NCBI GenBank assembly: GCA_026770705.1 | Contig: JANJGN010000150.1 | Coordinates: 558,001-622,000 of the forward strand | Length of the DNA: 64,000 nt | Direction: 5' to 3' | Origin: Isurus oxyrinchus | Taxonomy: Eukaryota | Shown here: positions 16,601 to 50,896 of the stretch, in pieces | Numbering within the stretch: the stretch's first letter is position 1 | How the letters are laid out: every line of letters begins with the position of its first letter | The notes under the pieces: generated by a model | Told to the model about the DNA's origin: nothing | The model's database searches: none | Seen by the model: the letters and a program-made list of their open reading frames with translations, nothing else | Translations under genes and position numbers: made by a program

Positions 16601-16848
16601 TCAGTTTTTCTGGAACCTGATCTGTGCGTATTCGTGTCCTCGCTCCTGTGCACAGTCCTGTCACCGCTGGGCAGCTTTGAAAAGTTGATGTTGGCGTAGA
16701 AAAGCTCGTCAGGTTTGTCGGAGTTCCCATGTCCAACATCGCCTCCCACTGGACCTTCAGAGAGACCCCGGGGAGCTGGGGTCTCCCCCTCACTAGTTGT
16801 GTCTCTGGTTGTGTTCCGGGGCTCAGTAATCAGCACGTTCTGTTTACC
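16601..16848 (-). CDS. Gene D last cytoplasmic exon: ITIM (LFYANI) plus ITSM-like (T)EYAQI reached only after a 1-nt frameshift
   Basis: Acceptor ctgtag, phase 0. GKQNVLITEP...DELFYANINFSKLP...RSED, then AC GAA TAC GCA CAG ATC AGG TTC CAG AAA AAC TGA. Uncorrected, the frame runs on to 16495. Confidence 0.85.
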
Positions 16849-17309
16849 CTACAGAGAAATAGAAACAGAAGACATCCTCACATCATTTACTGGTACTGAT
16901 AGGGTTAAATTATTCTGCAGCCTCGTTACTGTCAGTCATGTCTCAATGGGTTTAACCCTCTTTTTCACTCTCTTTCTCTGTCTCATTTTTTTCAATCTCT
17001 TTCTCTGTCTCTCTTTCTGTCTCTCTCTCTTGCTTTCTCTCTCTATTTATCATGTAATCTCTCTCGCTATCGCAGACCTGAGTCTTGAAGTCCTATGTTA
17101 CCATCCCAATCATGAGATTTGTGCCCCATTATTCACAAACACAGACACACAAAGAACCTCACGCCAATGAAGGAATTTTATTGAAGGGCGACACTGCTAC
17201 AGTGTTGGAAATGTGGCCATGGGACCAGGTAAGATGGTAAACATGGTCAGCATTATACAACTATTCTGAAAGAGGCACCTCGAACACTGCAATGTTCTCT
17301 CAGTGCTCT

Positions 17310-17685
17310 CTGCTGACAGTGCAGCACTCCCTCGGAACTGCCCCTTCAAGAGGGCAGCACCCCTTGAAAATGGACTCTTTGACAGTGCAGCACTCACTCA
17401 GTACTGTCCTCAGTACTGACCATCCGACAGTGCAGCATTCCCTCTGTACTGACCCTCCGACAGTGCAGCACTCCCTCAGTACTGACCGTCCGACAGTCCA
17501 GCACTCCCTCAGTACTGACCCTATGACAGCGCAGCACTCCCTCAGTACTGACCCTCTGACAGTCTAGCTCTCCCTCAGTACAGACCCTCTGACAGTGCAA
17601 CACTCCCTCAGTACTGACCTTCTGACACTCCAGCACTCCCTCAGCACAGACCCTAGGACAGTGCAGCACTCCCTCACTACTGACA
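17310..17685 (+). repeat. 33-bp satellite
   Basis: Same unit. Confidence 0.9.
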
Positions 17686-17896
17686 TCAGGTGCCTTGTCA
17701 TTATTGCGTTCAGGTTTCTGGTCAAAGAGCGAGTGATGGAGGGAAGAGGGGGAGGGAGCGAGAGACAATGCTACCTACTGAGCCATATCTGACTACACAG
17801 GTAGATATCTGTGGGTAACCTGGCTGGGAATCTGGGACACGTGTTGTCTACACACTGAGATTGAAGCTTTGGAGTGTGTGTAAACAGCTCCTGTAC

Positions 17897-17978
17897 CTGG
17901 TGTTTCACAGAGAGTGGACTGGGGGTCAATGCAATGTCACTGGTCCCTGAAACTCTCTCCTCCATCGCTGTCTTTCTC
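17897..17978 (-). CDS. Gene D first cytoplasmic exon (RKTAMEERVSGTSDIALTPSPLSVKHQ)
   Basis: Acceptor ttgcag, donor CAG|gtacag. 82 nt, phase 2 to 0, bridging the TM and last exons. Confidence 0.85.
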
Positions 17979-18519
17979 CTGCAATAACACAATATCACAC
18001 TGTGGTTATCATATAGCAGAGAGTCAGTGCAGCACAGACACAGAGCCCAGTGTAACCTTACACCAACGACTGGACTGTCTCTAGTTCCAATAAGGGATAT
18101 CAGCGTGACATCACTATAATGGAAGTGTGTCATGTGATCCAATCTTAGTTTGACTTTTGCTTTGAGCAGAACACACACTCACAGCTCTGATGCCTTCAAT
18201 CTTTCTCCATATGTATAACTGTTCTCGTGCCGAGTCTTGATAAACAAATCATTAACATTCTCACCCAATCCCTGTGAGCGATTGGTGCTTTGTTTCTTGT
18301 ACAATAAATAAGCCTAAGGTATAATATCATTATAATGACACGCCATATCTTTGACCCCCCCTCCACCCCTGCTCTTCCCCCCATAGCCCTTCAAATGTTC
18401 CCCCTTCAAGTATTTATCCAATTCCCCTTTTGAAAGATCCTATTAAATCTGCTTCCAGCGCCCTTTCAGGCAGCACCTTCCAGATCACAGCAACTGATTA
18501 TTATTCATCTGGATAACGG

Positions 18520-19010
18520 GCAATGAAAAACACTGTCTGGATCGTAAGGGACAAAAGAGACCAGTTACGGAGAGGCATCTGGCGCTTAACACAAGGGAAA
18601 CAATCACCGACTTCAGGAAAGAACATTGAAGCAAATATTTATCCAGGAGTAATCGTGCAGAGTGAGGAATCTCTGGGTCTCGTGATTGTTTACTGGATAC
18701 AGGACAATGAAAGGTTCTCTCCGGATCATAGTGGACACAGGGACCAGTTACGGAGAGGGACCTGGTGCTGATCCCAAGGGAAACAATCACCGACTTAAGG
18801 AAAGAACATTGAAGCAAATATTTATCCCGGAGTAATCGTGCAGAGTGAGGAATCTCTGGGTCTCGTGATTGTTTACCTGGATACAGGACAATGAAAGGTT
18901 CTCTCCGGATCAGAGTGGACACAGGGATCACTTACAGAGAGGGACCTGGTGCTGATCCCAAGGGAAACAATCACCGACTTAAGGAAAGAACATTGAAGCA
19001 AATGTTTATA
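18520..19010. repeat. ~183-bp tandem repeat (~2.7 copies) in a gene D intron
   Basis: caatcaccgactt recurs at 18601, 18784 and 18968. Confidence 0.88.
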
Positions 19011-19039
19011 TTAAAATCAAGTTAAATCTTCAGACTTAC

Positions 19040-19136
19040 TTTCTCACACAGATGAAGATGAAGATTCCAGCCAGGAAAACACTCAACATGATCCCAGCCG
19101 TGAACAATCCTACTGTCCATTTACTGGAGTCTCTAC
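19040..19136 (-). CDS. Gene D transmembrane exon (RDSSKWTVGLFTAGIMLSVFLAGIFIFICVRK)
   Basis: ttttacag / gtaagt, 97 nt, phase 1 to 2, uncharged hydrophobic helix. Confidence 0.9.
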
Positions 19137-19946
19137 CTGTAAAAACAGCCATTAATTACTGCACTACAGGTTTACAATGATGCTCCGATGTATCTCGAGA
19201 AGCGATACACTCACTCAGTGTTTAAATACTCATTCTCGGGCAATGCTGACATTTATTGTCCATCCCTAGTTTCCCCTTGAGAAGGTGGTGGGGGGTCTTC
19301 CTCCTGAACCACTGGTTTGTCCCAAACTGGGAGACCAGTTCAGAGGGCAGGTGTGAGTTAACCATGTTGGTGTCTGAGACTGGAGTCACATCCACATCGA
19401 GACATGCTTCCCTCCCTAAAGGGTATGTAGTCTCTACACATGTAACAACCAACCTCACTGAAATAATCGACTATCAGGTCATTATCACACGGTGGTTTGC
19501 GGGATCTTGCTGTGCACAAATCAGTACCTGTGTTTCCTACATTACAACAGTGAGCTCACTTCGATAATGCTGCATTGGCTGTTGAATGTTTAGTAATTTC
19601 TAAGCAATTTATGAATACAATAGTTGCATTTCAACATGTAACATTTATATATAATATTTATCAATTCAAGAATGAGAAGTTCAGCAATTAAAAGGGTTGT
19701 TCAGGACAGTTAGAGAGAGAAAGGTCGTCAAGTATGGAGATTGGAAACGAAGACCTGACAGCCTTGTCCTGACAACCATTGAAGGAGAAACTGAGAGCAA
19801 AAACAGAAAGGAAGAGGAAAAATTGGATGTGTGGATAACGTGGACTGAGCGAGGATTGAAGAAAACTGGATTAAAAACAACACGATCCCAATGGCTCCAC
19901 GGAGACCACGGAGACAACAAACAAACAAATGTATCTCCACACTCAC

Positions 19947-20915: not shown

Positions 20916-20948
<33 letters not shown>

Positions 20949-23354: not shown

Positions 23355-26300
23355 CTAAGAACAAATCAAGTGTTTAATGTGAGCAAGCAGCGTGCACAGC
23401 AAGACTCCATGCATCATCTCTCTGTATCTGATGTCTGTATGCATTTCCAGATACCTTCCCTCCATATAACTTCCACTGTCAAATTTATAATGGGCACTGC
23501 CGATGTAAACAGTCAAACTACAGTTACATTCTCCCACCAGTAGAGGTGCTGTCCACCTAGAATGAAAGAAACTTTCACATCCTCAGGATTTTGCCAAGGG
23601 ATTTACGGGAATGAATTGTATTTGATCGATGGAGCACTGAGGGGTAAATCTACAATTCTCTGTTCAGGAGGTTGCTCATCCAGTTCAGGGTCTTGTTGAT
23701 CTGGAGTTTACCTTCCTTCAACACAGAATCGGAGCTGACACCGAGACTCCAGTGCAGACCTGAGAGAGAAGAGGGACCTCACCCGTGTTTATGTGTATGT
23801 GTTTGTGTTTCTACATATGTGAGTATGTTTGTGTGAGTATGCATGCATGTGTCTGTGTGTGCATGTGTGTATGTGTTTGCGCAAATGTGCGTGTGTCTTT
23901 GTGTATATTTCTGTGCATAAGTGAATGTGTGTACATGTGTATGTGTATGTGTGTGCATGTGTGAGTGTGTGTGTGTGAGTTGAGTGTGTGTATGTTTCTG
24001 TGTAGGTTTTTGCACGTGTATGACTGTGTGTAAATGTGCATGTATGTGCCTACACATGAGTGTGTGTGTGTGTGTGTGTGTACATGTGTGCATGTGGATT
24101 GTCGCATCTTTATTATTAACGTTATTTAAAAATAGTGATCACACAAGCCTGGCTTCTAAGGAGATGAAACTGCAAACAATTTACAGTAAAGTGAAATGTA
24201 CAGGAATAATCTATTTATTTTGAGTTGATGATATATAATTATACATGAGGCATGTTGCTAATTTCAAACATCATCTGAAATATGGCAGGTCTGACAGAGC
24301 AGCATTCCCTCAGTGTCCACCCTCTGACAGTGCAGCACTCCCTCAGCATTGACGCTTTGAGAGTGCAGCACTCCTTCAGTATTGACCCTCTGGAAGTGCA
24401 GCACTCCCTCAGTGTTAACCCTCCAACAGTGCAGCACTCCTTGAGTACTGACCCTCTGACAGTTCAGCACTGCCTCAGTACTGACCCTTTGATAGAGCAG
24501 GGTTTCCCTCAGTACTGACCTCCTGACAGTGCAGCACTCCCTCAGTACTGACCCTCTGACAGTGCAGCACTCCCTCAATACTGACCCTCCAACAGTGCAG
24601 CACTCCCTCAGCACTCCCTCACTGGGGAGAGTCCATCTGGGTTTTGAGCTGAAACCTTGAGACGGTTTGAAAACCCCAACCTGCTGTCTTGGAGAGAGAG
24701 AGAGAGAGAGTGAGTGCGTGTGTGAGAAAGAGTGACAATGTGTGTGTGAGAGAGTGACAGTGCGTATGTGTGCGAGAGAGAAGGATAGAGAGAAAGAGAA
24801 AATGTGTGAGAGAGCAAAAGAGAGGTAGAGTGTGTACGCATGAGAGAGCGAAGTAGCTGAATTGTGTGAGAGAGAGAGTGTGTGTGAGAGAAAGGGAATG
24901 TCTGTGTTAGAGAGAGAGCTTATGTGTGAGAGAGAAAGAAAGAGAGAGAATCTGTGAGTGTTAGATAGTGTGCGTGTGAAAGAGAGAGTGTGTATGTGAG
25001 AGAGCGTGTGCGTGAGACCGTGTGTGTGTGTGTGTTTGAGAGAGAGGGTGTATGTGTTTGAGAGAAGGAGTGTGCGAGAGAGGGTGTGTGTATTTGAGAG
25101 GGAGTGTGTGTGTTTAAAAGAATGAACAAGAGAAAATGTGTGTACGTGTGTGTGTGTGTGTCTGCGTGTGCATTCTGACTGAGCCGAGTTTACAGTTTCA
25201 CACGTTGCTAGGGACCACTTTTCTGCCTCTCTGTCAGACTGTGTGTATCTGACAGCAGGTCAGGCAGGAATAGTCCAGAATGCGCTGTGGTTTTGTAGCA
25301 TTGAAACAACGACATGAACTAATTGAGTGCTGCACCAAATAAAGACATGGAGTGACCACACCAAAAAACCACGTGACTTCCCCAGTTTCACATCTCTCTC
25401 AAACACAGAAAAACTGGGTTAACACTGACCCTCCTCCCAGAGCCAGTTCACCTCGTGTCCGATGCAGTCAGGAGAGGAAGATCATCTCTCCTCCGATCCT
25501 GCTAAACTGAACATTTCCAGAATTAGATCAGCTCCCTGAAGTGTCTCCAGTTAGACATTCATCTGACAGGATTGACTCTACAACCCTGGGGACTCATTCT
25601 CCTGTAAGTAAAACACTTGCTGCTCCTGTCAAATCTCTTCTGTACAGCATGGTCTCTGGATGTCCCAGAACACTTTACAGTTGAGTTCACCCTTTTTTCG
25701 AAGTGTGGTTACTGTTGTAATGTAGGAAACGCAGCAGCCAATTAGCGCACAGCAAGCTCCCACAAACAGCAATGTGATCATCTGTTTTTGGTGATGTTGG
25801 TTGAGGGATAAATACTGGTCCCAGGACACCGGGGAGATCTCCCCCCTGCTCTTCCTCCAAATAGTGGCTGTGGGATCTTTCACACCTGCCCGAGAGGGCA
25901 GACGGGGGTCTCGGTTTAGTGTCTAATATTGGACTAATCTCCAGGCGAGGTTGGCTGGATGGATTATTGACAAGGTCCATTCACCCTGTAAAGAGTTTCT
26001 CTGGTTTGAAATACCCGATCAAACATCGAGTTCTGTGTCTAAACCTTGTGTTGAAAAGACACCTTTCCAGCTCTTCACCTGCCATTAGCTTGTTGAGTCT
26101 TCACATGCTCTGTCTGTCCGTAACCAACCCCTCTTAACTCATCCTTTCCTTGTCGTACATCGAGCTGTTCATCCTGACGGGTTCCATCCTTCCCAGTAAC
26201 ACTCCAACTCCGACATCAAACTAACTCCCAACACGTTGATGAATTGCATGGATTCCAGCGTCAGTTGGTTCTGTCTGAGGCTGTTTCTCTGATCGGGGAC

Positions 26301-26689: not shown

Positions 26690-27255
26690 GTTCTGACAGT
26701 GCAGCACTCCCTCAGTACTGACCCTTTGACAGTGCAGCACTCCCTCAGTACTGACCCTCTGACAGTGCAGCACTCCCTCAGTACTGACCCTCCGACAGTG
26801 CAGCACTCCCTCAGTACTGACCCTCTGACAGTGCAGCACTCCCTCAGTACTGACACTCTGACAGTGCAGCACTCCCTCAGTACTGACCCTCTGACAGTGC
26901 AGCACTCCCTCAGCACTGACCCTCCGACAGTGCAGCACTCCCTCAGTACTGATCCTCTGACCGTGCAGCACTCCCTCAGTACTGACACTCTGACAGTGCA
27001 GCACTCCCTTAGTACTGACCCATTGACAGTACAGCACTCCCTCAGTACTGACCCTCTGACTGTACAGCACTCCCTCAGTACTGACCCTCCGACAGTGCAG
27101 CACTCCCTCAGGACTGACCCTCTGACTGTACAGCACTCCCTCAGTACTGACCCTCTGACAGTGCAGCACTCCCTCAGCCCTGACCCTCTGACAGTGCAGC
27201 ACTCCCTCAGCACTGACCCTCTGACAGTGCAGCACCCCCTGAGCACTCCCTCACT
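26690..27255 (+). repeat. 33-bp satellite
   Basis: About 17 units. Confidence 0.92.
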
Positions 27256-28226: not shown

Positions 28227-28272
28227 ATGGGAGAGGTCGGTCTGATATTGATCTTCATCAGCTTGCTGCAAG
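28227..28272 (+). CDS. Siglec/CD22-like gene B leader exon (MGEVGLILIFISLLQ)
   Basis: ATG at 28227, donor CAAG|gtac, phase 1. Confidence 0.9.
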
Positions 28273-29092: not shown

Positions 29093-29449
29093 GAGTGACG
29101 TCAGAGGGATGGTCTATGAAGGCGCTGTCTCGGAGGGCCATCAGCAGCTCTTGTGTGGTTATTCCGTGTAGCTTTGACTTTCCTTCCCACTCTTACACAG
29201 CACTGCACGGAGCTTGGTATAAATATTGGTATAGATGGAAATATACCATCACATACACCAAAGATCCCAACTATGCGATGGCCACATTCGTGGGACGTGC
29301 TAAAATAATCGGCGACTTGGAAGGGAAGAATTGTTCGGTGAGGATTGAGAGTCTCAGAGCTGAAGACAGTGATGTGTATTACTTCTACGTGGATGCGGAG
29401 GGCTACACAGATCACACTTTTACACAACCAGTCCAACTCCAGGTTCTTG
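29093..29449 (+). CDS. Gene B V-set Ig exon (Siglec-type Cys pattern, no essential Arg: DVYYFYV)
   Basis: 357 nt, open, phase 1-1, tttcag / gtaagt. SCVVIPCSF, GRAKIIGDLEGKNCSVRI, EDSDVYYF. Confidence 0.92.
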
Positions 29450-29579: not shown

Positions 29580-29975
29580 TGCAGTACTGAGGGAGTTCCA
29601 CACTGTCAGAGGGTCAGTACTGAGGGAGTGCTGCACTGTTGGAGGGTCAGTACTGAGCGAGTGCCACACTGTCAGAGCATCAGTACTGCGGGAGTGCTGC
29701 ACTGTCGGACGGTCAGTACTGAGGGAGTGCTACACTGTCGGAGGGTGAGTACTGAGGGAGTGCTGCACTGTCACCGGGTCAGTACTGATGGAGTGCTGTA
29801 CTGTCGGAGGGTCAGTATTGAGGGAGTGCTGCACTGTCGGAGGGTCAGTACTGATGGAGTGCTGTACTGTCGGAGGGTCAGTACAGGGGGAGTTCTGCAC
29901 TGTCGGAGGGTGAGTACCGAGGGGGTGCTGCACCTTTGGGGGGTCAGTATTGAGGGAGTGCTGCACCATTGGGGG
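29580..29975 (-). repeat. 33-bp satellite
   Basis: Same unit, reverse orientation. Confidence 0.9.
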
Positions 29976-30624
29976 GGTCTTTGCCGAGTGAGTGCTGCTC
30001 TGTCTGAGAATCATCACTTGTATCAAAACGTTTTTAACTTTACTGTTGTTCCCACTTCAGCTGCAACTGCTCCACATCCCCATGTGTTAACTGGAGCATG
30101 TCAGCCTGGAGTTACGTGGAATTGCAGAGCAGAATCTGCTCTCACACATTGAAGCTGGCAATCGCTAAGTGTCCCTCAGTGATGATGTTTTCTGATGGAA
30201 TGAAACTTGGCAAAGCAGTGGGTAGTGATAAGGAGAGATTGGGCATGAGAGGGGCAGGATCAGGGTGAGGTGGGCAGACACATGGCTGATGCAGTTCACC
30301 GCAGTGTCGTGTGAAGTGACGCACTTTGTCAGGATGAATACAGACAGATATTGGACAGTAATGATTTGGACAGGTGTAGGTGAGCAGAGACCTGGGCGTC
30401 TCTCTGCACTCATTCTGAAAGATTAAAGGACAACTTGTTGAGGTGATGAAGAAAGAAAATGTCTTCCTTGTGTTAACAGACTGAGGAACCGAGTTAAAAG
30501 CAAAGAGATCATGCGGGAACTTTATAAATCACTGGTTAGAACTCAGCTGGAATATTGTTCAGAACGCTGGGCCTCCACACTTCAGGAAAGATGTAAGAGC
30601 TTCAGAAAGGGTGTCCAAGAGGAC

Positions 30625-31602: not shown

Positions 31603-31860
31603 ATTCTCCTCACAACACGTCTGTCAGGATGACACTGGAAAAAGGAAAGGTGATTTCTCTAAGTTGTTCCAGTGACGGGAATCCAGCAGTCCACAATTTC
31701 ACCTGGTTTAAGATCTCCCAAGGAAAGGTGACGAATCTCGCGCTCGCTGGTCAAACTATTACAGTTCCTTATGGATTCGATGAGGAAATCTCCTACTACT
31801 GTGAAGCAACAAGTATCCTGGGCAGTTCCCAGTCTCTGCCCATTAGAATTCCCACTGAAT
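31603..31860 (+). CDS. Gene B CD22-like C2 Ig exon
   Basis: 258 nt, phase 1-1; LSCSSDGNPAVHNFTWFK...YYCEATSILG. Confidence 0.9.
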
Positions 31861-33214
31861 GTGAGTAATTTCAATCCTGACTTTTAAACAATTCCACATC
31901 TTGTCCAAACTCCGAGGTGAATCAAATCTCCCCTTGGGTGTTGCTGAAAACATGCTGTCGAAGGTTTCAATCCTCGTCAGGACAGAGTCACGAGAAAACC
32001 CAATCTCAAAGGGAACAGCCATTTCTGATGCGGGGGAAGAGGGCGTGCTGATTGGCTGGCAAGTCGACATTTCTCCACAGTTTGTTCACAATTCTCAGTG
32101 ATGGTCACCATGAAACTACCAGATTGTTGTAAAAACCCATCTGGGTCAGTAATCTCCTTTAGGGAGGGAATTCTGCCATCCTTACCCGGTCTGGCCTACA
32201 TGTGACTCCTGACCCACAGCCATGTGGGGGAATCTTAACTGCCCCTCTGAATGGGCCGGGCATGCCACTCAGTTGTATTCGAGCGGGCGGCTCACCACCG
32301 CCTTCTCAAGGGGCAACTAGGGATGGGCAATAAACGCTGGCCCTGCCAGTGATGCCCACATTACTGAATGAATTCCAATAGAAGAGGAATCCTCCCATTC
32401 TAGAGATTGGCGATCCATACACTGGGCTGACATTCCCAGTCATTCAATAATCAGCCTGTTCCCCCATTCAATCAGATCACGGCTGGTCTGTATATTAACC
32501 CCATCCACCCAGCTCGGTTCCTTAAACCTTAAACACCCCCCGACCCAACAGAAATCTCCCAATGTCAGTTTTGAAATTTACAATTGACCCCTCCCAGCCT
32601 CGACAGCTTTTTCTGGGGGAGAGAGTTCCAGATTTCCACCCCCCCTTTGTGTGAAGAAGTGCTTCCTGACATCACCCCCTGAACGGCCTGGCTCCAATTT
32701 TAAGATTCTGCCCCCTTGTTCTGGACCCCCCCTCACCTCACCCCCACCCCCAACCCCCACACCCACCCTCACCCCCACCCCCACCCCCACCCCCACCCCC
32801 ACCCTCACCCCCACCCCCTCACCTCACCCCCACCACCAGGGGAAATAGTTTCTCTCTATCGACCCCATCAAATCCTTTAATCATCTTAAACCCCTCGATT
32901 AGATCACCCCTTAATCTTCAAGACTCGAGGGAACACAAGCCTGGTCTGTGCAACCTGTCCTCAGAATTTAACCCTTTCAGCCCCGGGATCGTTCTGGTGA
33001 CTCTGGGCTGCAGCCCCTCGGAGGGCAATATACCCTCCCTGAGGGGCGGGACCCACAACTGAAGCCACTAACTGCAGGTGGGCTCTGAGCAGAGATTTAT
33101 AACCTGATGCATCTCTCCGAGCCTCTTTGTATTCCCACTTCCTTGGGGTAAAGGCCCCAATTCCATCTGAATTCTCTATTGCTACGGTGTGACTGACACG
33201 GGATATATTAATGG

Positions 33215-35520
33215 GTGGTTTTCCTCTGAACTGTATCTCAGAATAAATGATCCCCTGGAAAACAGTGACCATAACCTGGTACAATTCAGCATTCCCTCTG
33301 AGACTGAGAAACTTGGGTCGGAAACAACTGTGCTGGACTTAAATAAGTGTAATTACAAAGGAATAAGGACAGGGTTGTCTGGAGTGGACTGGGAAAGGGG
33401 TTTAGCAGAAAAGATGCTGGATGAACAATGGCAGATCTTTAAGAAAATATCTCATGACTCACAACAAAGATATATCCCGGTGAGGAAGAAGGATTGTAGG
33501 AAGAGAATAAACCAACCTGGGTTACCCAAAGAAGTTAAGGCGTGTGTCAAATTGAAAGAGAAAACATGCAATATGGTTAGTGGTAAGCCAGAGGATTGGG
33601 AACGTTTTAAAAACCAACAGAAGATGACCAAAAAATAAATAAAGAGGCAGAAAACTATGTAAACTAGCAAATTATAAAAAAAGGACAGTAAAAGCTTCTT
33701 TAAATATATAAAAAGGGAGAGAGAGACCAAAGTGAACATAGGCCCCTGAGAGAACTAGGCTGGGGAAATAATAATGAGGAGCCAGGAAATGACAGAGGAG
33801 TTGAATAAATACTTTGCATCAGTCTTCACGGTAGAACACACTAATAGCATTCCAAAAAAACTAAATAATCAAGGGGCAAAAGGGGGGTGGGGGGAGGAAA
33901 TAAATACAGTAACTATCACTAGAGAATAATACTAGGGAAAGTCATGGGTCTCAAGGCTGATAGGTCCCCTGGACCTGATAGGTTGCATCTTAGGATATTA
34001 AAGGAAGTAGATGCAGAGATAGTGGATGCACTGGTTTTAATCTTCCAAGAATCCTTAGATTCTGGGAAACTCCCAGAGGATTGGAAATCTGCCAAAGTAA
34101 CACCCATATTCAAAAAGGGAGGGAGACAACAAACAGGTAACTATAGGCCAGTTAGCTTAACATCTGTCATTGGGAACATGTTAGAGTCCATTATAAAGGA
34201 TGTAATAGCAGACTATTTAGAAATGCATAATTTAATCACACACAGGCTTCATGAAGGGGAAATCATGCATGACAAATTTATTAGAATTCCTTGAGGAGAT
34301 AACAAACAGGATAGATAAAGGGGAACCAGTAGATGTAATATATTTGGATTTCCAAAAGTTGTTCAGTAAATTACCACATATAAGGCTACTTAATAAGATA
34401 AGAGCCCATGGTGTTGGGGGCAGTATATTAGCATGGATAGAGGATCGACTAACTAAGAGAAGACAGAGATTTGAGATAAGGGGGGCATTTTCAGGATGTC
34501 AACCTGTGGAGTGCCACAGGGATCAGTGCTGGGGCCACAATTATTTACAATATATATTAATGACTTGGATGAGGGAAATTAATGTACTTTCGCCAAGTTT
34601 GCGGATGACACAAAAATAGATGGGAAGGCAAGTGGTGAGGGTGACACGAAGAGTCTACAGAGAGACATAGACAGGTTCAGTGAGTGGACATCAACTTGGC
34701 AGATGGAATATAATGTGGGAAAATGTGAGCTGCTGCACTGTGGCAGGATGTATAGAGGAGCTGAATATTATTTCAATGGAGAAAGACATTGGAAAGGTGA
34801 AGCATATTGGAATTTGGGGGTCATCAGAAAGATAACTTACAAGTTCAACAGTTAATAGGGAAGGCAGGTGGAATGTTGGCCTTTATTTCAAAGGGAATGG
34901 AGTATAAAAATAGGGAAGTCTTGCTAAAACTATACAAGGCACTAGTTAGACCACACCTAGAATACTGTGAGCAGTTTTGGTTCCCTTATCTAAGGAAAGA
35001 TGTACTGGCATTGGAGGCAGTCCAGAAAAGGTTCACTAGGTTGATCCCAGTAATGGAGGGATTTTCATATGAGGAGAGGTTGAGTAGGATGGGCCTGTAC
35101 TCATTGGAGTTTAGGAGAATGAGAGCTGACCTTATTGAAACATATAAGATTCTTAGGGCGCTTGACAGGGTAGATGCTGAGAGGTTGTTTCCCCTTGTGG
35201 GAGAGTCTAGGACCAGAGGGCATAATCTCAGAGTAAGGGGGCACCCATTTAAGACAGAGATGAGGAGTTTCTTCTCTCAGAGGGTAGTGAATGTGTGGAA
35301 TTATTTACTGCAGAGAGCTGCAGAGGCTGGGTCATTAATTATATTCAAGGCTGAGATACACAGTTTTTTAATCAGTCAGGGAATCAAAGGCTATGGGGAA
35401 GAGGCAGGAAAGTGGAGTTGAGGATTGTCAGATCAGCCATGGTGCCATTGAATGGCGGAGCAGAGTTGATTGGCCGAATGGCCTCCTTCTGCTCTGACGT
35501 CTTGTGGTCTTATGGTCTTA
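33215..35520 (+). mobile_element. CR1-like LINE, 5'-truncated, degraded RT ORF
   Basis: SDHNLV, SPGPD, NYRPVSLTS, YLDFQK, FADD, LYKALVRPHLEYC..LYSLEFRRMR. Confidence 0.92.
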
Positions 35521-35524
35521 TCAC

Positions 35525-36480
35525 CCTCCAACAGTGCAGATCTCCCTAATTACTGATCCTCCGACAGTGCAGCACTCCCTCAGTACTGACCCTCCGACAG
35601 TGCAGCACTCCCTCAGTACTGACCCTGCAACAGTGCAGCACTCTTCCAGTACTGACCCTCCGACAATGCAGCACTTCCTCAGTAATGACCCTCCGACAGA
35701 GCAGCACTCCCTCAGTACTGAACATCTGACAGTGCAGCAATCTTCCAGTCCTGACCCTCCGACAGTGCAGCATTCTTCCAGTACTGACCCTCCGACAGTG
35801 CAGCATTCCCTCAGTACTGACCCTCCGACAGTGCATCACTCCCTCAGTACTGACCATCCAACAGTGCAGCACTCCTTCAGTACTGACCATCTGACAGTGC
35901 AGCACTCCCTCAGTACTGACCATCCAACAGTGCAGCACTCCCTCAGTACTGACCATCCAACAGTGCTGCACTCCCTCAGTACTGACCCTCTGACAGTGCA
36001 GTACTCTCTCAGTACTGACCCTCTGACAGTGCAGCACTCCCTCAGTACTGACCCTCTGACAATGCAGCACTCTCTCAGTACTGATCCTCCGACATTGCAG
36101 CACTCCCTCAGTACTGACCATCCAACAGTGCAGCACTCCATCAGTACTGAACCTCCAACAGTGCAGCACTCCCTCAGTACTGACCATCAAACAGTGCAGC
36201 ACTCCCTCAGTACTGACCATCCAACAGTGCAGCACTCCCTCAGTACTGACCCTCCGACAGTGCCGCACTCCCTCAGTACTGACCATCCAACTGTGCAGCA
36301 CTCCCTCAGTACTGACCATCCAACTGTGCAGCACTCCCTCACTACTCATTCTCCGACAGTGAAGTACTCGCTCAATACTGACTATGCGGCAGTGCAGCTT
36401 TCACAGTACCCACGCTCCAACAGTGCAGCACTCCCTCAGTACTGACCCTCCGACAGTACAGCACTCCCTCAGTACTGAGC
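35525..36480 (+). repeat. 33-bp satellite
   Basis: About 29 units. Confidence 0.92.
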
Positions 36481-36609: not shown

Positions 36610-36891
36610 ACACACCACAGAATCTCTCAATTAATTCTCTTGATATGATTAACGTTTCATTGATCAATATAATTGAGGGGAATTCTGCAGTGATAATCTG
36701 CTCAGTCGAGAGCTTCCCAGCTTCTAACCTGACGTGGCGACATCTTAATGTCCCAATGAACAGAACAAGTTCCAACAATGAGCTGTGGTTGGTGATTCCT
36801 CACGTTACATCCAGGGACACTGGAGACTATCAATGTGTGGCAGAGAATGAACATGGAGCAGTGGAGGGGTTCATAACCATCACTGTGGAAC
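36610..36891 (+). CDS. Gene B C2/I-set Ig exon (module shared with genes C and D)
   Basis: 282 nt, phase 1-1, ttttcag / gtgagt. Confidence 0.9.
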
Positions 36892-37370: not shown

Positions 37371-37652
37371 ATGCTCCACAGAACCTCTCAATTACTTCTC
37401 TTGATATGATTAACGCTTCATCGATCAATATAATTGAGGGGAATTCTACAGTGATAATCTGCTCTGTCGAGAGCTTCCCAGCTTCTAACCTGACGTGGCG
37501 ACATCTTAATGTCCCAATGAACAGAACAAGTTCCAACAATGAGCTGTGGTTGGTGATTCCTCACGTTACATCCAGGGACACTGGAGACTATCAGTGTGTG
37601 GCAGAGAATGAACATGGAGCAGTGGAGGGATTCATAACCATCACTGTGGAAC
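37371..37652 (+). CDS. Gene B second C2/I-set Ig exon (shared module)
   Basis: 282 nt, phase 1-1, tttttag / gtgagt. Confidence 0.9.
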
Positions 37653-38918: not shown

Positions 38919-39015
38919 GGCGAGATTCCAATGAATGGAAAGCAGGATTGCTTGGAGCTGGAATCTGTTTGAGTGTTGGACTGAGTGGATTCTTCATCTT
39001 CAAGTGTATGAGAAA
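38919..39015 (+). CDS. Gene B transmembrane exon (RDSNEWKAGLLGAGICLSVGLSGFFIFKCMRK)
   Basis: ttttacag / gtaagt, 97 nt, phase 1 to 2; paralogous to the gene D TM exon. Confidence 0.9.
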
Positions 39016-39622: not shown

Positions 39623-40372
39623 GAATCACGTCACAGAGTCAGGACACAAAGGGTTAACAGTTTGTTAACAACACAACACTAAGGCCCTACGTTTCAATGA
39701 AAGGGTTTTCACAATTGTTCCCCAATTCCTGATTTGACTCACAGAGACACATCCACCCTTTCTCATTAAATACACAGAGGGAGCAGCACAGGAAGAGGTC
39801 ATTCAGCCCAAGCAGAGCGTGTGGGCAGTTCCTCCCCAGGCGAGCAGTCGGACAGGTACTGGGTAAGTAACGGAACGATTGGAATTCACTTCCACCACCA
39901 ACACCGTCCTTTGTTGATGTTGTGACTTTATAAAGACAGATTGCAATGATTGATGCCTTTGAAAGATTTCTACTGATTATTGAGATCTGGGTGTGAGGCT
40001 CAAGTCTGTTGTACAGAACATCTTTCTGGTTAAATTATGCAGACAGGTTACACACAGTCTACGATTATATTCACTCGGGTCTAGAAGATTTAGGAGGGAT
40101 CTAATTGAGGGGTTCAAACTGATTAAACACTCGATAGGGTCGATAGAGAGAAGCTATTCCCTCGGGTGGGGGTGAGGATGGGGGTCGGGTGGAGTCCAGA
40201 ACAAGGGGGCTGGAACTTCAGATTGGAGCCAGGCCGTTCAGGGGTGATGTCAGGAAGCACTTCTTCACACAAAGGGGAGTGGAAATCTGGAACTCTCTCC
40301 CCAATAATCAAACCCAACACCGAATACACATCATGTTGATTGTCATTCTGTCCATTTCCATCTCTATTTCGG

Positions 40373-40453: not shown

Positions 40454-40609
40454 CGTGGTTGGGCTTTGAGGAATCAGGTGAGTCACACACCACAGGATCC
40501 CCAGCCTCTCAGCTGCTCCAGTAGCCTGGTTATTGATATGGCTGCTCCAGTCCTGTATCTGCAATGTTTTATACAGTCACTCCCAAACCCAACCAAACTC
40601 ACACCCAAC

Positions 40610-42140
40610 ACCATTCAGAATCAATAATCAAACCCCGATCAGAATCAATAATCAAACCCCGTTCAGAATCAATAATCAAACCCCGTTCAGAATCAATAAC
40701 ACACCCCGTTCAGAATCAATAATCAAACCCCGTTCAGTATCAATAACCAAACTCCGTTCAGTAACAATAATAAAACCCCTTCAGAATCAATAATCAAACC
40801 CCGATCAGTATCAATAATCAAACCCCGTTCAGAATTAATAATCAAACCCCTTTCAGAATAAATAATCAATCCCCGTTCAGTATCAATAAACAAACCACGT
40901 TCAGTATCAATAATCAAACCCTGTTCAGAATTAATAATCAAACCCCTTTCAGAATCAATAATCAATCCCCGTTCAGTATCAATAAACAAACCCAGTTCAG
41001 AATTAATAATCAAACCCCGTTCAGAATCAATAATCAAACCGCGTACAGAATCAATAATCAATCCCCGTTCAGTATACATAATCAAACCCCGTTCAGTATC
41101 AATAAACCAACCCCGTTTAGTATCAATAATCAAACCCCTTTCAGAATCAATAATCAATCCCCGTTCAGTATCAATAAACAAACCCCGTTCAGAATTAATA
41201 ATCAAACCCCGCTCAGTATCAATAATCAAACCGCGTTCAGAATCAATAATCAAACCCCGTTCAGTATACATAATCAAACCCCGTTCAGTATCAATAATCA
41301 AACCCCATTCAGAATCAATAATCAAACCCCTTTCAGAATCAATAATCAAAACCCAGTTCAGAATCAAGAATCAAACACCGTTCAGTATCAATAATCAAAC
41401 CCCGTTCAGAATCAATAATCAAACACTGTTCAGAATCAATAATCAAACCCCATTCAGTATCAATAATCAAACTCCGTTCAGGATCAATAATCAAACATCG
41501 TTCAGAATCAATAATCAAACCCCGTTCAATATCAATAATCAAACCCCGTTCAATATCAATAATCTAACTTCGTTCAGCATCAATAATCAAACCCCGTTCA
41601 GATTCAATAATCAAAACCCTTTCAGAATCAATAATCAAACCCCATTCAGTATCAATAATCAAACCCCGTTCAGTATCAATAATCAAACCCTGTTCAGAAT
41701 TAAAAATCAAACCTGTTCAGTATCAATAATCTAATCCCGTTCAGAATCAATAATCAAACCCCGTTCAGAATTAAAAATCAAACCCCGTTCAGTATCAATA
41801 ATCTAACCCCGTTCAGTATTAAAAATCAAACCCCGTTCAGTATCAATAATCTAACCCCGTTCAGTATCAATAATCAAACCCCATTCAGTATCAATAATCA
41901 AACCCCGTTCAGAATCAATAATCAAACCCTGTTCAGTATCAATAATCAAACTACGTTCAGGATCAATAATCAAACTCCGTTCAGATTCAATAATCAAAAC
42001 CCATTCAGAATAAATAATCAAACCCTTTTCAGAATCAATAATCAAACCCCGTTCAGAATTAAAAATCAAACCCCGTTCAGAATCAATAATCAAACATCGT
42101 TCAGGATCAATAATCAAACCCCGTTCAGTATCAATAATTA
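40610..42140. repeat. 24-bp minisatellite (aatcaataatcaaaccccgttcag), ~63 copies
   Basis: Period 24 seen directly. Confidence 0.95.
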
Positions 42141-42237: not shown

Positions 42238-42354
42238 AAGAAAGATGAGAAGGATCTGGAAATGAAATCTAACCGCGGAGTCAATCCTGATACAGATGAT
42301 GATCTTTACGCAAACTGTGATTTTGCCAAGGATTCTGTTTATGGGAATTTATAA
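42238..42354 (+). CDS. Gene B terminal cytoplasmic exon (KKDEKDLEMKSNRGVNPDTDDDLYANCDFAKDSVYGNL*) with ITIM-consensus SVYGNL
   Basis: Acceptor attacag, phase 0, 117 nt to TAA, two Tyr motifs. Confidence 0.75.
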   Translation, partial: KKDEKDLEMKSNRGVNPDTDDDLYANCDFAKDSVYGNL

Positions 42355-45460: not shown

Positions 45461-46139
45461 GCATGTGAACAGTCAATGGCCCTTCAAAAACATTCTTGGC
45501 ACGCAAAGGGTTAATAGTTTTCTAACAGTGCGAGGCAAAGAGCATCTTTCTCACTTGGTACCAAGCACTTCCTCATTTTGACTCACAGTGACACATCCAC
45601 CCTTTTTAATTAAACACACAGAGGGAGCAGCACAGGAAGAGGTCATTCAGCCCAAGCAGAGCTTGTGGGCAGTTCCTCCCCAGGCGAGCAGTCGGACAGG
45701 TCGGGGGTAAGTAACGGAATGATTGGAAATCACGGGGGGAGTTCTGAGGGCTCCTAATCCATTGTCCTGTCTTGTAAATCAGCACCTTAATACTGACCCT
45801 TCAACAGTGCGGCACTCCCTCAGTACTGATCCTCCAACATTGCAGCACTCCCTGATTAATGTCCCTCTGACAGTGCAGCACTCCCTCAGTACTCACCCTC
45901 AAACAGTGGAGATCTCCCTCAGTACTGATCTTACAATAGTGCAGTAATGACCATCCGACATTGCAGCACTCCCTCAGTACTGACATTGGGCAGTTTCAGT
46001 CTACTCTGTGGGGCAGACGTCCCCTGAATGGGGTCTTGAATCCCACAACATTCTGACCCCCTGAATTTGGCTGTGAAACCCACTGACCCACAGGAGAAAC
46101 TCCTGGTCAATGACTGTCCACCTGTGAGCAGAAATATCA

Positions 46140-46360
46140 ACACAGGGTCAGGACACAAAGGGTTAACAGTTCACCAACATCTCAAAACATGAGCTGCTCT
46201 GTCACTTTGATCCAACTTCCTCATTTTGACTCACAGAGACACATCAACCCTTTCTCATTAAATACACAGAGGGAGCAGCACAGGAAGAGGTCATTCAGCC
46301 CAAGCAGAGTGTGTGGGCAGTTCCACCCCAGGCGAGCAGTCGGACAGGTCCTGGGTAAGT
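46140..46360 (+). promoter_or_regulatory. Probable promoter and non-coding first exon of gene C (TGACTCA, TTCCTC/CAGGAAG ETS-like, attaaata, donor gtaagt at 46355)
   Basis: Lies ~400 nt upstream of the leader-exon acceptor; near-identical copies at 39630-40027 and 45500-45730. Confidence 0.5.
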
Positions 46361-46782
46361 AACGGAACGATTGGAATTCACTTCCACCACCAACACCGTC
46401 CTTTGTTGATGTTGTGACTTTATAAAGACAGATTCCAATGATTGATGCCTTTGAAAGATTTCTACTGATTATTGAGATCTGGGTGTGAGGCTCAGGTCCG
46501 TTGTACAGAACATCTTTCTAGCTCAAGGGATGAGGGAAGTGCAGAGACATGAGCTTTGGGATGTCCTGAGGTGCTGAAAGGTGCTATAGAAATGCAAATC
46601 CTTCATTGTTTGTCTTTCTTAAAGCCTTGTAACTCTCTGCAGAGCACCTATCATCCCACAGAGAATCAAATTAGTCTGTGAAGACATTGTCTAAAAGCAG
46701 TTCTGATCTCTCGAAAGGTGCTGGACAAGAGGTGAGATCTCATTAACTCCTTTCTCTTTCACAGCTTGAGAGTGAGAAGTGG

Positions 46783-46843
46783 ATGGAATATCTGGGAGTG
46801 GACAATGATCGGGAAATCTACTTCCTCTTGTCACTTCTCCAAG
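46783..46843 (+). CDS. Gene C leader exon (MEYLGVDNDREIYFLLSLLQ; or MIGK-IYFLLSLLQ from ATG 46805 with one base missing)
   Basis: Acceptor at 46763-46764, donor CAAG|gtaata, phase 1; ends in SLLQ like the gene B leader. Confidence 0.75.
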
Positions 46844-47546
46844 GTAATATCATCGTCAGCTTGGACAGATTTATAGTTAACAGTCTTTGTAAAAGATCAT
46901 TCTTATCTCTTTATCTCTGTAACCTCCTGCAACGCAACCAATCAACTTCCCAGGTCTCTGTGTTACTCCAATTCTGGCCTCTTGACCATCCCCCGATTCC
47001 CATCACTCCAATACTGGCGGCCGTGCCTACAGCTGCCTGGGACCTGAGCTCTGGAATTCACTCCCTAAACCTCGGCGATGGAGGAGATCAGAGGGTTTCA
47101 TTTTACTGAGAATCACCACGACCACATCACAGCTGCAGTGAGAATAGACAGAGAGTCCAGCCCTCACACTTACTGCACAGTTTCACCATAGCAACCACAA
47201 TATGGAAATTTAAAAATACTGAAAGTTAAACTGAAGCTCAGCCCATTCAGTGTTGAGAGATGAGATATTTACACAGTTTCCCTGTCTATCTTGTAGACAC
47301 TGTGTTGGGTGGAAGACTGGCTTCACTAAACAGGGTCCTGAGGACCATGAGCCAATGTAGAATGAACTTGTCCACTCCTGTGTCCAGGATTCTCTTCTAT
47401 CTGTTGTGAAACCTTGGGGAGTTCCTTGTGTGTCCTGTAGATGGTCCACACTGCAGCCACTGTGCCCCAGTGATGGAAGGGGTGGATATCGAGTCTAGTG
47501 GATCTACAAACCATCCAGAGTCAAATATTGATATTTCTCTCCCCAG

Positions 47547-47920
47547 TTGGACTGTCACAAGAGTGGAAAGGTGACACTCCACGAGAGGTGACAGCGCAGG
47601 AAGGTTCGTATGTACAGATTCCATGTCATTACAGTTACTTATCAAATTTCGTAGGGAGATCACGTGCGGAATCTGGTTGAAAGGAATAGATGGGAACCCA
47701 CAGCCTAAATGGTCTATAGCCTTTCACTCCGAGGGTCACAATCACAGGGATCAAAGATTCCGCCATCGTACCCGGCTGTCTGGAGACCTGAAAGATGGCG
47801 ACTGTTCCCTGATTATAAACAACATCAGACGGGAAGATGCAGGACCTTATTTCTTCAGGATAGAATTTGACAGCAGTAATAGTTACAACTACTATCCTGT
47901 AACCCAGCTTCATGTTTCTG
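47547..47920 (+). pseudogene. Gene C Siglec V-set exon with the essential Arg (PYFFRIE) but a 1-nt deletion near 47666
   Basis: ccccag / gtaagt; 374 nt (375 needed). AQEGSYVQIPC..GIW..RTRLSGDLKDGDCSLIINNIRREDAGPYFFR. Confidence 0.88.
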
Positions 47921-48320
47921 GTAAGTGCTGTGTTATAATTACTCAACAATTCACATTCAACACTCAATGGGAATTAACACAAACTGTGACGTTTACATAT
48001 TAACACAAAACACAGCTTATTATAACACACTGTCTGATTCTCAATAACCTGGTGATAGCTTCCAGTTCAGTCCTAAAGCAACCTCTAATACTCACTTTAA
48101 TATCAATGATTAAATGTATTGACTGTGTCCATCAAAGTTATCAGGTTATCCACTCTCATCGATCTCTCTAATCCTGTTTAAAATAATTTCCTGATCATTG
48201 TAACCTCTCAGTTCTGATATCATCCTTGTAAAAGTGCTTTCTCTTGTGGGACTGTGATTTCTATTTGAACTGATGCTTCACGTTATATTTCTCTAAAAGG
48301 ATCCATTCTCCGTCTGTTAG

Positions 48321-48617
48321 ATTTCACAGATAAACCCACGATATTCCCTGCTGAAATTATTGCAGGAAAGCCTGTGGATGTAAGCTGCACCTTCAACACA
48401 ACGTGCAATGGAACAGCAGCACCTGTCTTAACCTGGGACACTCCCACTGACGTACCTGGATCAGTCTCAAACACTGTAACTCAGCATGGTGTCACTCTGA
48501 CCTATACTTCTGTTCTGACCCTGATCCCATCACTCAAACACCACAGACACACTCTCAGCTGCAGAGTGAGATATCCATCTGTTTCATCGGAGCGGACCCT
48601 CGTACTAACTGTGCAAG
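48321..48617 (+). CDS. Gene C Siglec domain-2 C2-set exon
   Basis: 297 nt, open, phase 1-1. KPTIFP..VSCTFNTTCNGTAAPVLTW..SVLTLIPSLKHHRHTLSCRV, the CD33/MAG-type D2 with an extra Cys. Confidence 0.92.
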
Positions 48618-48940
48618 GTAAGTACGGACACCTTTCATTCTACATCAGCACTCCCTCAGCGCTGACCCTCTGACAGTGCAGCCCGTTCTCAGTATCCACA
48701 TTCTCATGCCTCTCAAAGTGCTTCACAGTCGATAGAAGTTAATTGATCTTTATTTGATTATTGCTGAATGAAGAGACAAGCTGTCTAAACTTCTCATATT
48801 GCAAACAGCATTCTCCACGGCAACACCTCCACCTATCAGAGACCACTTGCCAACCAATCAGCACTGTCTTCCCATTAAGTATAAATTGTTGTTCACTTCC
48901 TGTTGGTAATCATGCGAACGGGGTTCTTGATTCCTGCCCT

Positions 48941-49093
48941 GACATCTTAATGTCCCAATGAACAGAACAAGTTCCAACAATGAGCTGTGGTTGGTGATTA
49001 CTCACGTTACATCCAGGGACACTGGCGACTATCAGTGTGTGGCAGAGAATGAACATGGAGCAGTGGAGGGGTTCATAATCATTACTGTGGAAT
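48941..49093 (+). pseudogene. Gene C 5'-truncated copy of the shared C2 exon
   Basis: Only HLNVPMNRTS...ITVE plus the gtgagt donor remain; the acceptor and first ~130 nt are replaced by unrelated sequence at 48758-48940. Confidence 0.85.
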
Positions 49094-50756
49094 GTGAGTG
49101 TACACAGACATCAACATCTCTCTCAGATTCGAATACTACACAAACACCCTCAAATGTACAGACCTAAATAGACACATGCAGACACACATATATGACCACA
49201 CACAAAGACACACTCACAAACAAACACACTAGCACAAGACTCCCTCATGGGTTACCTGACCTCCCTCAGTACTACACTGGAGCGTGGGCTGAATTCTGGG
49301 ATTTGTGTTCCCATTCATATTTATAGAAGAATATGGAAATTACTCATACAAACACTCAGATGCATAGAGGCACTCATAGATACTCTCTGCTTCTCCAACT
49401 CTCTCTCTCCCTTCAAGGAGCTACCTGAATCCTAACCCGTTGACGAATAACTAGTCCCAACTCCTCTTTATCTGATTCTGTGATTTTTTTGTGAATCTGA
49501 GAGTAAGAGAGAGGTGGAGAGGTTTAGTAAGAGAATTCCTGCTGATGAAAAGCTTACATCCTGTTCTCACTATTTCCGTGCCCATTATGTCCAAAGCCCC
49601 TGTTTATAGTGATGACTGCCTATGTAAACGTCACACTGTAGTTACAGCCTCCCACCAGTGGTGGCATTGTAGCACTTAATCCTTGTGTTTCCCAGCTTTT
49701 CAAGCAAATCTACTTCCCAGTTTGCTACACAAGCTGGGAGTTCATCGGAATTCAATTATTTCTCAAAAGGTAGATTTGATAATTCATTTTATTGAAAACT
49801 TCCTCAACGCCTCCCTGAAGTGTTTACACTCTCCGGGAAGCAGGATTAGGCTGGATGTTGGGGAGTTCATCTTTTCCCAGAGAGTAGGGATCCTCGGGAA
49901 TGTGCTGTCAGTGGGTGTGGTGGTTGCTGATTCTCTGTCACCTTCAAGAGGGATCTGGAGTGGTTACTGACTGGGGGAGAGATCATGGAAGCGGAGAATG
50001 ATACAGCACAGGAGGAGGCCATTCAGCCCATTGTGCCTGTGCCAGGTCTTTCAATGTTCTATCCAATCAGATCCACTAACCACCACACCACTTTGCCCCC
50101 ATCTTCCTCCTTCAAGTGTTTATCCAATTTCCCTTTTGAAAGTTCCTATTGAATCTGCTTCCGCTGCCCTTTCAGGCAGCACCTTCCAGATCACAACAAC
50201 TCGCTCTGTCAAAACAAATTCTCCTCATCTCCCCCTCCGGTTCATCAATCTGTGTCCCTCTGGTTACCGACCCTCCTGCCCCTTAAATACATCGGTAGTG
50301 TTCACATCACACACTCCCTGTGGGAGCGAGTTCCACATTCTCCCCTCTCTCTGGGTAAAGATTGGAACTGTTTATTAAGCGGGGGGTGTATGTCCGTGGG
50401 GGAGTCCATCTCGATCCTGCCCGATTCGCACACACGTCCGAGATGGATTTCCACCCTGCACTAAACGTTTCCAGAATTTTCTACAGCACAATCCTGTACA
50501 CAGCGATGGAGAGAAACATTGGACAGGGAGTCCAACAGCACAATGATCCATTCTCACCAATGTTCCACGCTAAGGGGAAAGTTCCGATTGTCCACTCTTA
50601 GAGTGTTTACAATGAAAACATTCCTTCCACATTGAATCCCAGTGGATGGGTCAATATTACAGCAAATGTTGAAGTGATATGAAGCTTGATTGTTCAGCCA
50701 GAGTGAGAGATTGAAAGCGGAGAGTCAGTGATGATTTCTTTCTGTGTGTTCTCTAG

Positions 50757-50896
50757 ACAGTGGAGGAGAGATTCTGCACGTGATCCTGATCCTGGGAATA
50801 CGAGCTGTGATATTCCTTGTGGCTGTGGTTATCACTATCGCTGGAGTCTGTGTCTGGGAGAGACAAACAGTGAAAGGAAGTCGACAGACTGTTTAA
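50757..50896 (+). CDS. Gene C TM/terminal exon with an intramembrane Arg and a short Tyr-free tail (SGGEILHVILILGIRAVIFLVAVVITIAGVCVWERQTVKGSRQTV*)
   Basis: Acceptor ttctctag, phase 1, CGA at 50801-50803 inside a hydrophobic run, TAA at 50894-50896. Confidence 0.82.

Follow-up and report, generated by a model that had tools for sequence, protein, structure and literature searches.

A probable slice of a CD33-type Siglec cluster with three signalling ends in the shark Isurus oxyrinchus

Introduction

Does a shark genome encode paired activating and inhibitory receptors of the Siglec type, and can such a pair be seen at a single locus? The question is raised by a stretch of 64,000 nucleotides (nt) of vertebrate DNA from Isurus oxyrinchus (assembly GCA_026770705.1, contig JANJGN010000150.1, positions 558,001-622,000, forward strand), here called the window. 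It contains the Siglec-type genes B (28.2-42.4 kb, +), C (46.8-50.9 kb, +) and D (23.4-16.5 kb, -) and a remnant, gene A; a sequence-only reading had proposed that B, C and D form a paired activating/inhibitory system. The well-known activating/inhibitory Siglec pairs are mammalian. In Siglec-5/14 and Siglec-11/16, the outer domains are nearly identical in two forms, one carrying an immunoreceptor tyrosine-based inhibitory motif (ITIM) and the other combining a short tail with a basic residue in its transmembrane (TM) segment. Fish genomes are said to lack CD33-related Siglecs, as put forward in a teleost study (PMC7226832).

In our view, the window probably covers one section of a large and rapidly changing cluster of CD33-type Siglecs with three signalling ends, whose local copies do not make up a matched pair. 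The genes would be assembled from interchangeable phase-1 exons, namely a V-set exon, a first C2-set exon and a repeatable second C2-set exon. To these would be joined one of three ends: an uncharged TM segment with ITIM and TEYAQI motifs, an uncharged TM segment with a ...YANC...VYGNL tail, or a TM segment in which an Arg is buried, followed by a tail of 13 residues. Gene C would represent the third design, consisting of leader, V, C2 and Arg-TM exon.

Exons were found from the listing of open reading frames (ORFs) and by tblastn, domains were called with Pfam, and V exons were compared with solved structures. All searches and trees were run on single exons and not on a joined (spliced) protein model. 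Public contigs were aligned to positions 46600-52000 at a likeness of at least 90%; these runs are stored as contigs and their RNA nature was guessed, X9 (organism A) as well as X17 and X19 (organism C) being taken as RNA-like and X1 as a DNA run. To find relatives, the V piece of gene C was compared with 1.84 billion representative proteins. Tail types were read in the 31 best-scoring of 533 relatives and in the 40 proteins of the first-C2 and V-plus-tail sets.

Gene C joins Siglec-type domains to a buried arginine

The last exon of gene C lies behind an acceptor rich in pyrimidines (...tctctag), is in phase 1 and reads SGGEILHVILILGIRAVIFLVAVVITIAGVCVW-ERQTVKGSRQTV up to its stop codon. The Arg in the TM segment and the Tyr-free tail of 13 residues described in the sequence-only reading are thus borne out. 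A second copy of this exon was not found in the window, either with P0159 as query or by blastn. Upstream, the first C2 exon is intact (Pfam C2-set_2, E = 1.9e-7) and contains SCTFNTTC. The V exon retains the Arg typical of Siglecs, in the motif YFFRIE, which aligns with the Arg of sialoadhesin and CD33, and its best matches among solved structures are sialoadhesin, CD33 and Siglec-5, -10 and -8.

Leader, V, first C2 and Arg-TM exon of gene C are spliced together in RNA-like contigs. The GT..AG joint 46843>47547 occurs in X17 and X19, the joint 47920>48321 in X9, X17 and X19, and the joint 48617>50757 in the RNA-like runs; all three are absent from the DNA run X1. The contigs match the C2 and TM exons of gene C at 98-99%. 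Joining of the 50757 exon to the Ig exons of gene C had been set beforehand as the test of the proposed activating member, and it is what these contigs display, with paralogs as a possible source of them. A basic TM residue, a short Tyr-free tail and spliced contigs, all features of an activating member, are therefore present in gene C. By analogy with Siglec-14/15/16, KIR and other charged-TM receptors, the Arg would most likely pair with an acidic residue of an ITAM-bearing adaptor chain (ITAM, immunoreceptor tyrosine-based activation motif).

As assembled, gene C also carries lesions. Its V exon is one base short of an in-frame length; the missing base lies near 47666, so that the part encoding strands A-B and the remainder of the exon are in different frames. 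A DNA contig of X1, which is 98.7% identical over 154 nt (two differences), has an extra T after 47666 that would restore the frame. The frameshift could hence stem from an error of assembly, from one allele or from a difference between paralogs. In addition, the first conserved Cys is replaced by Tyr (GSYVQIPC / SYVQIPC), where relatives have SCVQIPC. Siglecs characteristically have C-x3-P-C in strand B and, for the disulfide between domains, paired Cys in the first C2 domain. The joint 48617>50757 skips a dead half-copy of the C2 exon shared with genes B and D, to which it is 95-97% identical; this fragment has no acceptor, a stop lies directly upstream of it and the homology begins mid-exon.

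The leader exon varies between sources. An extra T after 46818, found in all organism-C contigs covering the position and in ~40% of the X1 DNA depth, would shift the start of gene C to the ATG at 46805. It turns the leader MEYLGVDNDRE... into MIGKSYFLLSLLQ, the start found in most relatives, and the Carcharodon isoforms P0010 and P0152 display both versions. A second variable stretch is the C-C' loop region of the V exon (47637-47712), where the RNA-like contigs diverge while their flanks match. The divergence comprises loose ends and a 78-nt 'skip' without splice signals, and it is here that relatives differ most. In Siglecs, the C-C' loop helps to determine glycan specificity.

Downstream of gene C, positions 51738-51906 are 80% identical to 16575-16403 (-), the region behind the gene D tail. 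Because of this resemblance to the 3' untranslated region (3'UTR) of gene D, we suggest, from the sequences compared, that gene C descends from a gene that formerly had an inhibitory tail exon. The homology is confined to the 3'UTR, and no coding remains of an ITIM or an immunoreceptor tyrosine-based switch motif (ITSM) were found downstream of gene C. In the same region, some contigs, among them DNA contigs of X1, join across 50914-51536 and 51072-51758, and a reverse-transcriptase fragment of a long interspersed nuclear element (LINE; 51026-51571, -) lies within one of the stretches crossed, which points to insertion/deletion differences between copies or alleles.

ITIMs of genes D and B

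Gene D ends in an uncharged TM segment followed by cytoplasmic exons, and its ITIM LFYANI (16704-16687) lies in the frame dictated by the exons upstream. The second motif, HEYAQIRFQKN with its stop at 16603-16601, is in a different frame. The two Tyr codons are 68 nt apart, whereas relatives (...SGDRTVHRSEDTEYAQIRFQKN) have 23 codons, or 69 nt, between them; one base, a G, is therefore judged to be deleted at 16633/16632. It puts the ancestral second motif and its stop (16632-16601), which in relatives reads TEYAQI, out of frame. Of the tail proposed in the sequence-only reading, the uncharged TM and the ITIM hold, while the 'ITSM-like' HEYAQI does not belong to the reading frame. A tiny intron linking the frames of LFYANI and HEYAQI was considered and rejected, as it would be only ~20 nt long and relatives show a one-base difference.

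No leader, V or first C2 exon of gene D was found in the window by tblastn on both strands with the window's own exons and eight family proteins as queries. The 23.4-28.9 kb region upstream of gene D, in which likewise no V or first C2 exon was found, is one arm of an inverted duplication of ~5 kb (4685-9960 vs 29382-24062).

In gene B, all eight of eight exons are consistent in phase. The last exon (42238-42354) terminates in ...DDDLYANCDFAKDSVYGNL, and SVYGNL, with which the gene had been said to end and does end, fits the ITIM consensus. The ITIMs of genes B and D would recruit SHP-type phosphatases. The best match of the gene B V domain among solved structures is MAG (E = 1.3e-14), followed by sialoadhesin and Siglec-5, and a Cetorhinus relative is named 'MAG-like' by RefSeq. 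Its Cys pattern is SCVVIPC. The sugar-binding Arg is replaced by Tyr, since YYFYVD of gene B aligns to YYFRGD of MAG with its Arg118.

The Siglec-like nature of the locus is upheld: the V exons match sialoadhesin, MAG, CD33 and Siglec-5/7/8/10 among solved structures, Pfam calls the Ig-type exons of the window V-set, C2-set_2 or Ig_3, and genes B and C follow the Siglec plan of a V-set then a C2-set domain, with no V exon found for gene D. The proposal that B, C and D are themselves the pair fails. The V domains of genes B and C are only ~29% identical, gene D is without a V exon and the shared C2 exon is skipped in gene C, so that near-identical ligand-binding domains are not present within the window. 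Judged by their sequences, the three copies are not a matched pair, because the V domain of gene B is unrelated and without the Arg, gene D is a 3' part with a frameshift and gene C is lesioned as assembled; pairing holds at the level of the family.

A family in sharks and rays

The V piece of gene C has 533 relatives at E ≤ 0.001, 93 of them at E ≤ 1e-10. Their signalling ends, as far as read, are a tail with ITIM and TEY(A/S)xI, a tail with YxNC...(V/I)Y(G/E/A)N(I/V/M), the Arg cassette, or none that is recognisable. The looked-up members span 15 shark and ray species: Carcharodon, Cetorhinus, two Scyliorhinus, Mustelus, Chiloscyllium, Hemiscyllium, Stegostoma, Pristis, Hypanus, Hemitrygon, Leucoraja, Rhinoraja, Amblyraja and Mobula. 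The RefSeq pipeline names these members CD33-like, Siglec-5/8/10/11/12/13/14/15 or MAG-like, with the exceptions of one 'hemicentin-1-like', one 'hypothetical protein', one 'uncharacterized protein' and one unnamed entry. The genes are thus already auto-annotated as CD33-like or Siglec-like, and in the literature we found no study of this shark, cartilaginous-fish or elasmobranch Siglec family. Eight of ten distant matches looked up are from tetrapods (caecilian, two turtles, anole, tree frog, elephant shrew and primate), four of them named Siglec-12 (caecilian, anole, tree frog and primate); the other matches come from a stingray (a CD33-like protein) and a cichlid (a V-set protein).

The Arg cassette is near-invariant around the Arg (VILILGIRA.IF) in Scyliorhinus torazame, S. 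canicula and Chiloscyllium punctatum and, with the window included, occurs in three shark orders. It was not seen in rays. Word-indexed searches, whether with the Arg cassette or with the inhibitory tail, reached close shark relatives only and were uninformative on the wider distribution. Two Pristis pectinata proteins, P0023 and P0056, have tails with a canonical ITAM (YQEL-x7-YSEL). Rays may, to go by these tails, build the activating partner with an ITAM of its own in place of the Arg cassette. In the inhibitory tail, the two Tyr are 23 residues apart in sharks, in primate Siglec-12 and in a turtle Siglec. The system had been described as 'independently built or very ancient'; this spacing makes the inhibitory tail look ancient, and the Arg cassette was found only in sharks, across three orders.

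The first C2 exon of gene C is closest to inhibitory proteins of another genus, with 97% identity to Carcharodon P0162 and 95% to Carcharodon P0152. With a Carcharodon protein of the second tail type the identity is 92%, and with the activating proteins of Scyliorhinus it is 87-91%. In the C2-exon tree, gene C and the inhibitory P0162 are joined with support 98/87. Much of the tree is unresolved, and it requires at least four changes of the activating state among five activating rows. Given these identities and the tree, the outer domains appear to follow lineage while the signalling cassettes are old, which is a paired-receptor signature at the level of the family. In the family, if not within the window, near identity across signalling types is therefore seen for the first C2 domain.

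Shared C2 exon and gene conversion

Six intact copies of a 282-nt phase 1-1 C2 exon, four in gene D and two in gene B, are 94-98% identical to each other, and a seventh, partial copy is the gene C fragment at 48.9 kb. The claim that all three genes carry the same C2 exon is accordingly correct for B and D, whereas gene C has only the skipped fragment of ~160 nt. The closest pair, D3 and B1 (98.2%), belongs to different genes on opposite strands. In contrast, the TM exons of B and D are 74% identical. This pattern would fit homogenisation at the level of the exon or a recent spread of the shared C2 exon. Homogenisation by gene conversion appears plausible, both because of the difference between 98.2% and 74% and because the first C2 exon of gene C clusters with an inhibitory Carcharodon protein rather than with activating proteins from other sharks.

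Other features of the window

The coordinates of all features are collected in Table 1. V-set exons are located at 29.1 kb and 47.5 kb (both +), with a truncated copy at 4.7-5.1 kb (-). The latter, gene A, is explained by the inverted duplication 4685-9960/29382-24062 and, as in gene B, lacks the Siglec Arg.

Table 1. Exons, exon remnants and a repeated element in the window
Gene or element	Feature	Position	Strand	Remarks
Gene A	Truncated copy of gene B V exon	4685..5080	-	Leader copy at 5855-5799
Gene D	Four tandem shared C2 copies	23354-23073, 22302-22021, 21256-20975, 20228-19947	-	
Gene D	TM exon	19040..19136	-	Uncharged: WTVGLFTAGIMLSVFLAGIFIFICV
Gene D	First cytoplasmic exon	17897..17978	-	
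Gene D	Last exon	16495..16843	-	Open frame continues to 16495
Gene B	Leader exon	28227..28272	+	MGEVGLILIFISLLQ; tblastn with Cetorhinus P0001
Gene B	V-set exon	29093..29449	+	Pfam V-set
Gene B	C2/Ig exon of different type	31603..31860	+	258 nt, phase 1-1
Gene B	Shared C2 copy B1	36610..36891	+	
Gene B	Shared C2 copy B2	37371..37652	+	
Gene B	TM exon	38919..39015	+	Uncharged core; 93% identical to Carcharodon P0022
Gene B	First cytoplasmic exon	39778..39862	+	
Gene B	Last exon	42238..42354	+	Ends ...DLYANCDFAKDSVYGNL, then stop
Gene C	Leader exon	46783..46843	+	ATG 46783; donor phase 1
Gene C	V-set exon	47547..47920	+	374 nt
Gene C	First C2-set exon	48321..48617	+	297 nt, phase 1-1, intact
Gene C	Dead half-copy of shared C2 exon	48941..49099	+	3' ~160 nt and donor only
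Gene C	TM exon	50757..50896	+	Buried Arg, 13-residue Tyr-free tail, stop
Downstream of gene C	3'UTR relic of inhibitory-type tail exon	51738..51906	+	
Hydrophobic-ORF element	Copy	25632-25883	-	Hydrophobic stretch of the element: ...MITLLFVGACCALIGCCVSYITTV...
Hydrophobic-ORF element	Copy	7857-8108	+	
Hydrophobic-ORF element	Copy	61577-61771	-	
Hydrophobic-ORF element	Copy	59294-59392	-	
Hydrophobic-ORF element	Copy	19481-19564	+	

The window is rich in satellites and LINE fragments. A 33-nt satellite recurs across it (listed at 17300-17690, 24290-24615, 26690-27250, 29580-30010, 35520-36480 and 52225-52810), and the long intron of gene B contains a 1-kb array of it together with a LINE fragment (33000-35420, +, among the listed stretches). 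A different, 24-nt satellite occupies 1.5 kb of the last intron of gene B (40600-42140). Two extra copies of the first cytoplasmic exon of gene B are found just upstream of the gene C leader, at 45602-45721 (+) and 46262-46354 (+), where 46212-46519 is 96.8% identical to 39722-40027; they could be what is left of another gene, or stem from recent segmental copying. A repeated hydrophobic ORF was considered as a leader or TM exon and rejected, as its five copies lie on both strands and Pfam gives no significant match; it is probably a repetitive element rather than an exon belonging to the Siglec-type genes. Four runs of N are located within 8549-12689, and the one at 9993-10134 adjoins an end of the 5-kb inverted duplication.

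Weighing the alternatives

Several observations weigh against the reading as a slice of a fast-changing cluster. One contig piece covering the V exon is only ~90% alike to gene C, and, given the threshold of 90% and V pieces at that level, part of the RNA evidence for gene C may come from near-identical paralogs or from organism C. The V exon is frameshifted in the assembly and without its first conserved Cys, and the gene carries half an exon besides. Gene D is without a V exon, and since assembly gaps adjoin the inverted duplication, some of the anatomy of the window may be mis-assembled. Finally, a survey of 2014 did not find the FcR-gamma chain in shark data (PMC4016189).

Under a first alternative, the copies in the window would be decaying by-products of turnover in the cluster, with gene C a pseudogene, gene D an orphan 3' fragment left by the inverted duplication and the functional paralogs elsewhere; nothing in the window would then function as a receptor pair. 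We regard this as doubtful, albeit as the likeliest of the alternatives. In its favour, gene C combines a V exon of 374 nt and the change of Cys to Tyr with a 5'-truncated C2 exon, gene D has lost a base before TEYAQI and shows neither a leader nor a V exon, the V copy of gene A is truncated, cytoplasmic exons exist in extra copies, and some RNA contigs reach only ~90% likeness to the V exon of gene C. Yet a DNA contig of X1 has the missing T, so that the frameshift may lie in the assembly or in one allele, the spliced contigs match the C2 and TM exons of gene C at 98-99%, and gene B is fully in phase. The window by itself documents modular exons and high turnover rather than a working pair.

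A second alternative concerns the signal and not the genes. The Arg-TM form with its short tail might not be activating at all, but a decoy, a partner of another membrane protein, or a protein whose Arg serves retention in the endoplasmic reticulum or assembly without ITAM signalling. The choice of adaptor is not readable from sequence, and the missing FcR-gamma chain would suit this explanation as well. We nevertheless hold it to be improbable, as three shark orders show strong conservation of the TM sequence near the Arg, which fits a specific contact within the membrane. To our knowledge, every well-studied family of the immunoglobulin superfamily with an Arg-TM, short-tail design couples to DAP12, DAP10, FcR-gamma or CD3-zeta-type chains.

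Least probable of all is that collapsed or mis-oriented repeats in a gap-rich scaffold produced the arrangement: opposite-strand genes with a 98% identical exon, a gene without a 5' end, four N runs with one of them at the duplication edge and the abundant satellites would all agree with such an artefact, but the exon copies differ at numerous sites and each has retained flanking introns of its own, the same modular architectures recur in independent assemblies of many species, and inverting the segment between the repeats would still leave gene D without a V exon.

A fast-changing CD33-type cluster thus remains our preferred reading of the window. How far back its design reaches is a more tentative matter. 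It is possible, if somewhat short of an even chance in our judgement, that CD33-type Siglecs with an ITIM-x23-TEY tail were present in the ancestor of jawed vertebrates and were lost in teleosts, while sharks kept a dedicated Arg-TM cassette from a time before their orders split and shuffle or convert it onto Siglec outer domains that evolve fast. Activating/inhibitory Siglec pairing would then be modular and of long standing, rather than something that mammals invented recently. Sharks and rays possess a large family with the canonical double-motif tail, and with it a conserved Arg-TM counterpart; if the family holds, this receptor logic would go back to early jawed vertebrates. The family would offer a natural system for studying adaptor use in an early-diverging vertebrate lineage and the diversification of ligand loops, as well as how exon shuffling and gene conversion match receptors of opposite signalling.

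Comparison with known receptor systems

The closest parallels are the mammalian CD33-related Siglecs (CD33, Siglec-5/7/9/12). As in these, a V-set domain with the F-strand Arg in YFFR(I/M)E is followed by C2-set domains, and the tails of shark relatives carry a proximal ITIM and a distal TEY..(I/V) 23 residues apart. Almost all named matches outside sharks and rays are tetrapod Siglecs of the CD33-related type. Unlike the mammalian receptors, the elasmobranch genes form a clade of their own in the C2-exon tree and have a repeatable extra C2 exon, with up to four copies in tandem here and about a dozen in Stegostoma P0021, and some members stack two to four V domains.

With Siglec-5/14 and Siglec-11/16 the family shares the contrast between an ITIM form and a basic-TM form with a short tail, and outer-domain likeness that follows the species and not the signalling type. 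In contrast to those pairs, the inhibitory genes of the window lack the V domain of gene C, and pairing is visible across the family only. The Arg cassette, moreover, forms an exon of its own, conserved in three shark orders, and did not derive recently from a neighbouring TM exon.

Multigene clusters of modular phase-1 Ig exons with rapid birth and death, many pseudogenes and ITIM forms beside charged-TM forms are also known from KIR, LILR, PIR, the teleost NITR and LITR and the Xenopus CEACAM receptors. The predicted ligand-binding domain differs, being a Siglec-type V-set domain here, compared with C2 domains in KIR and LILR and V domains in NITR. A further comparison is with MAG (Siglec-4), the best solved match of the gene B V domain. 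Gene B differs in that it has Tyr in place of Arg118, one V and three C2-type domains instead of the five-Ig plan, and an ITIM-type tail, and it is located inside an immune-type cluster.

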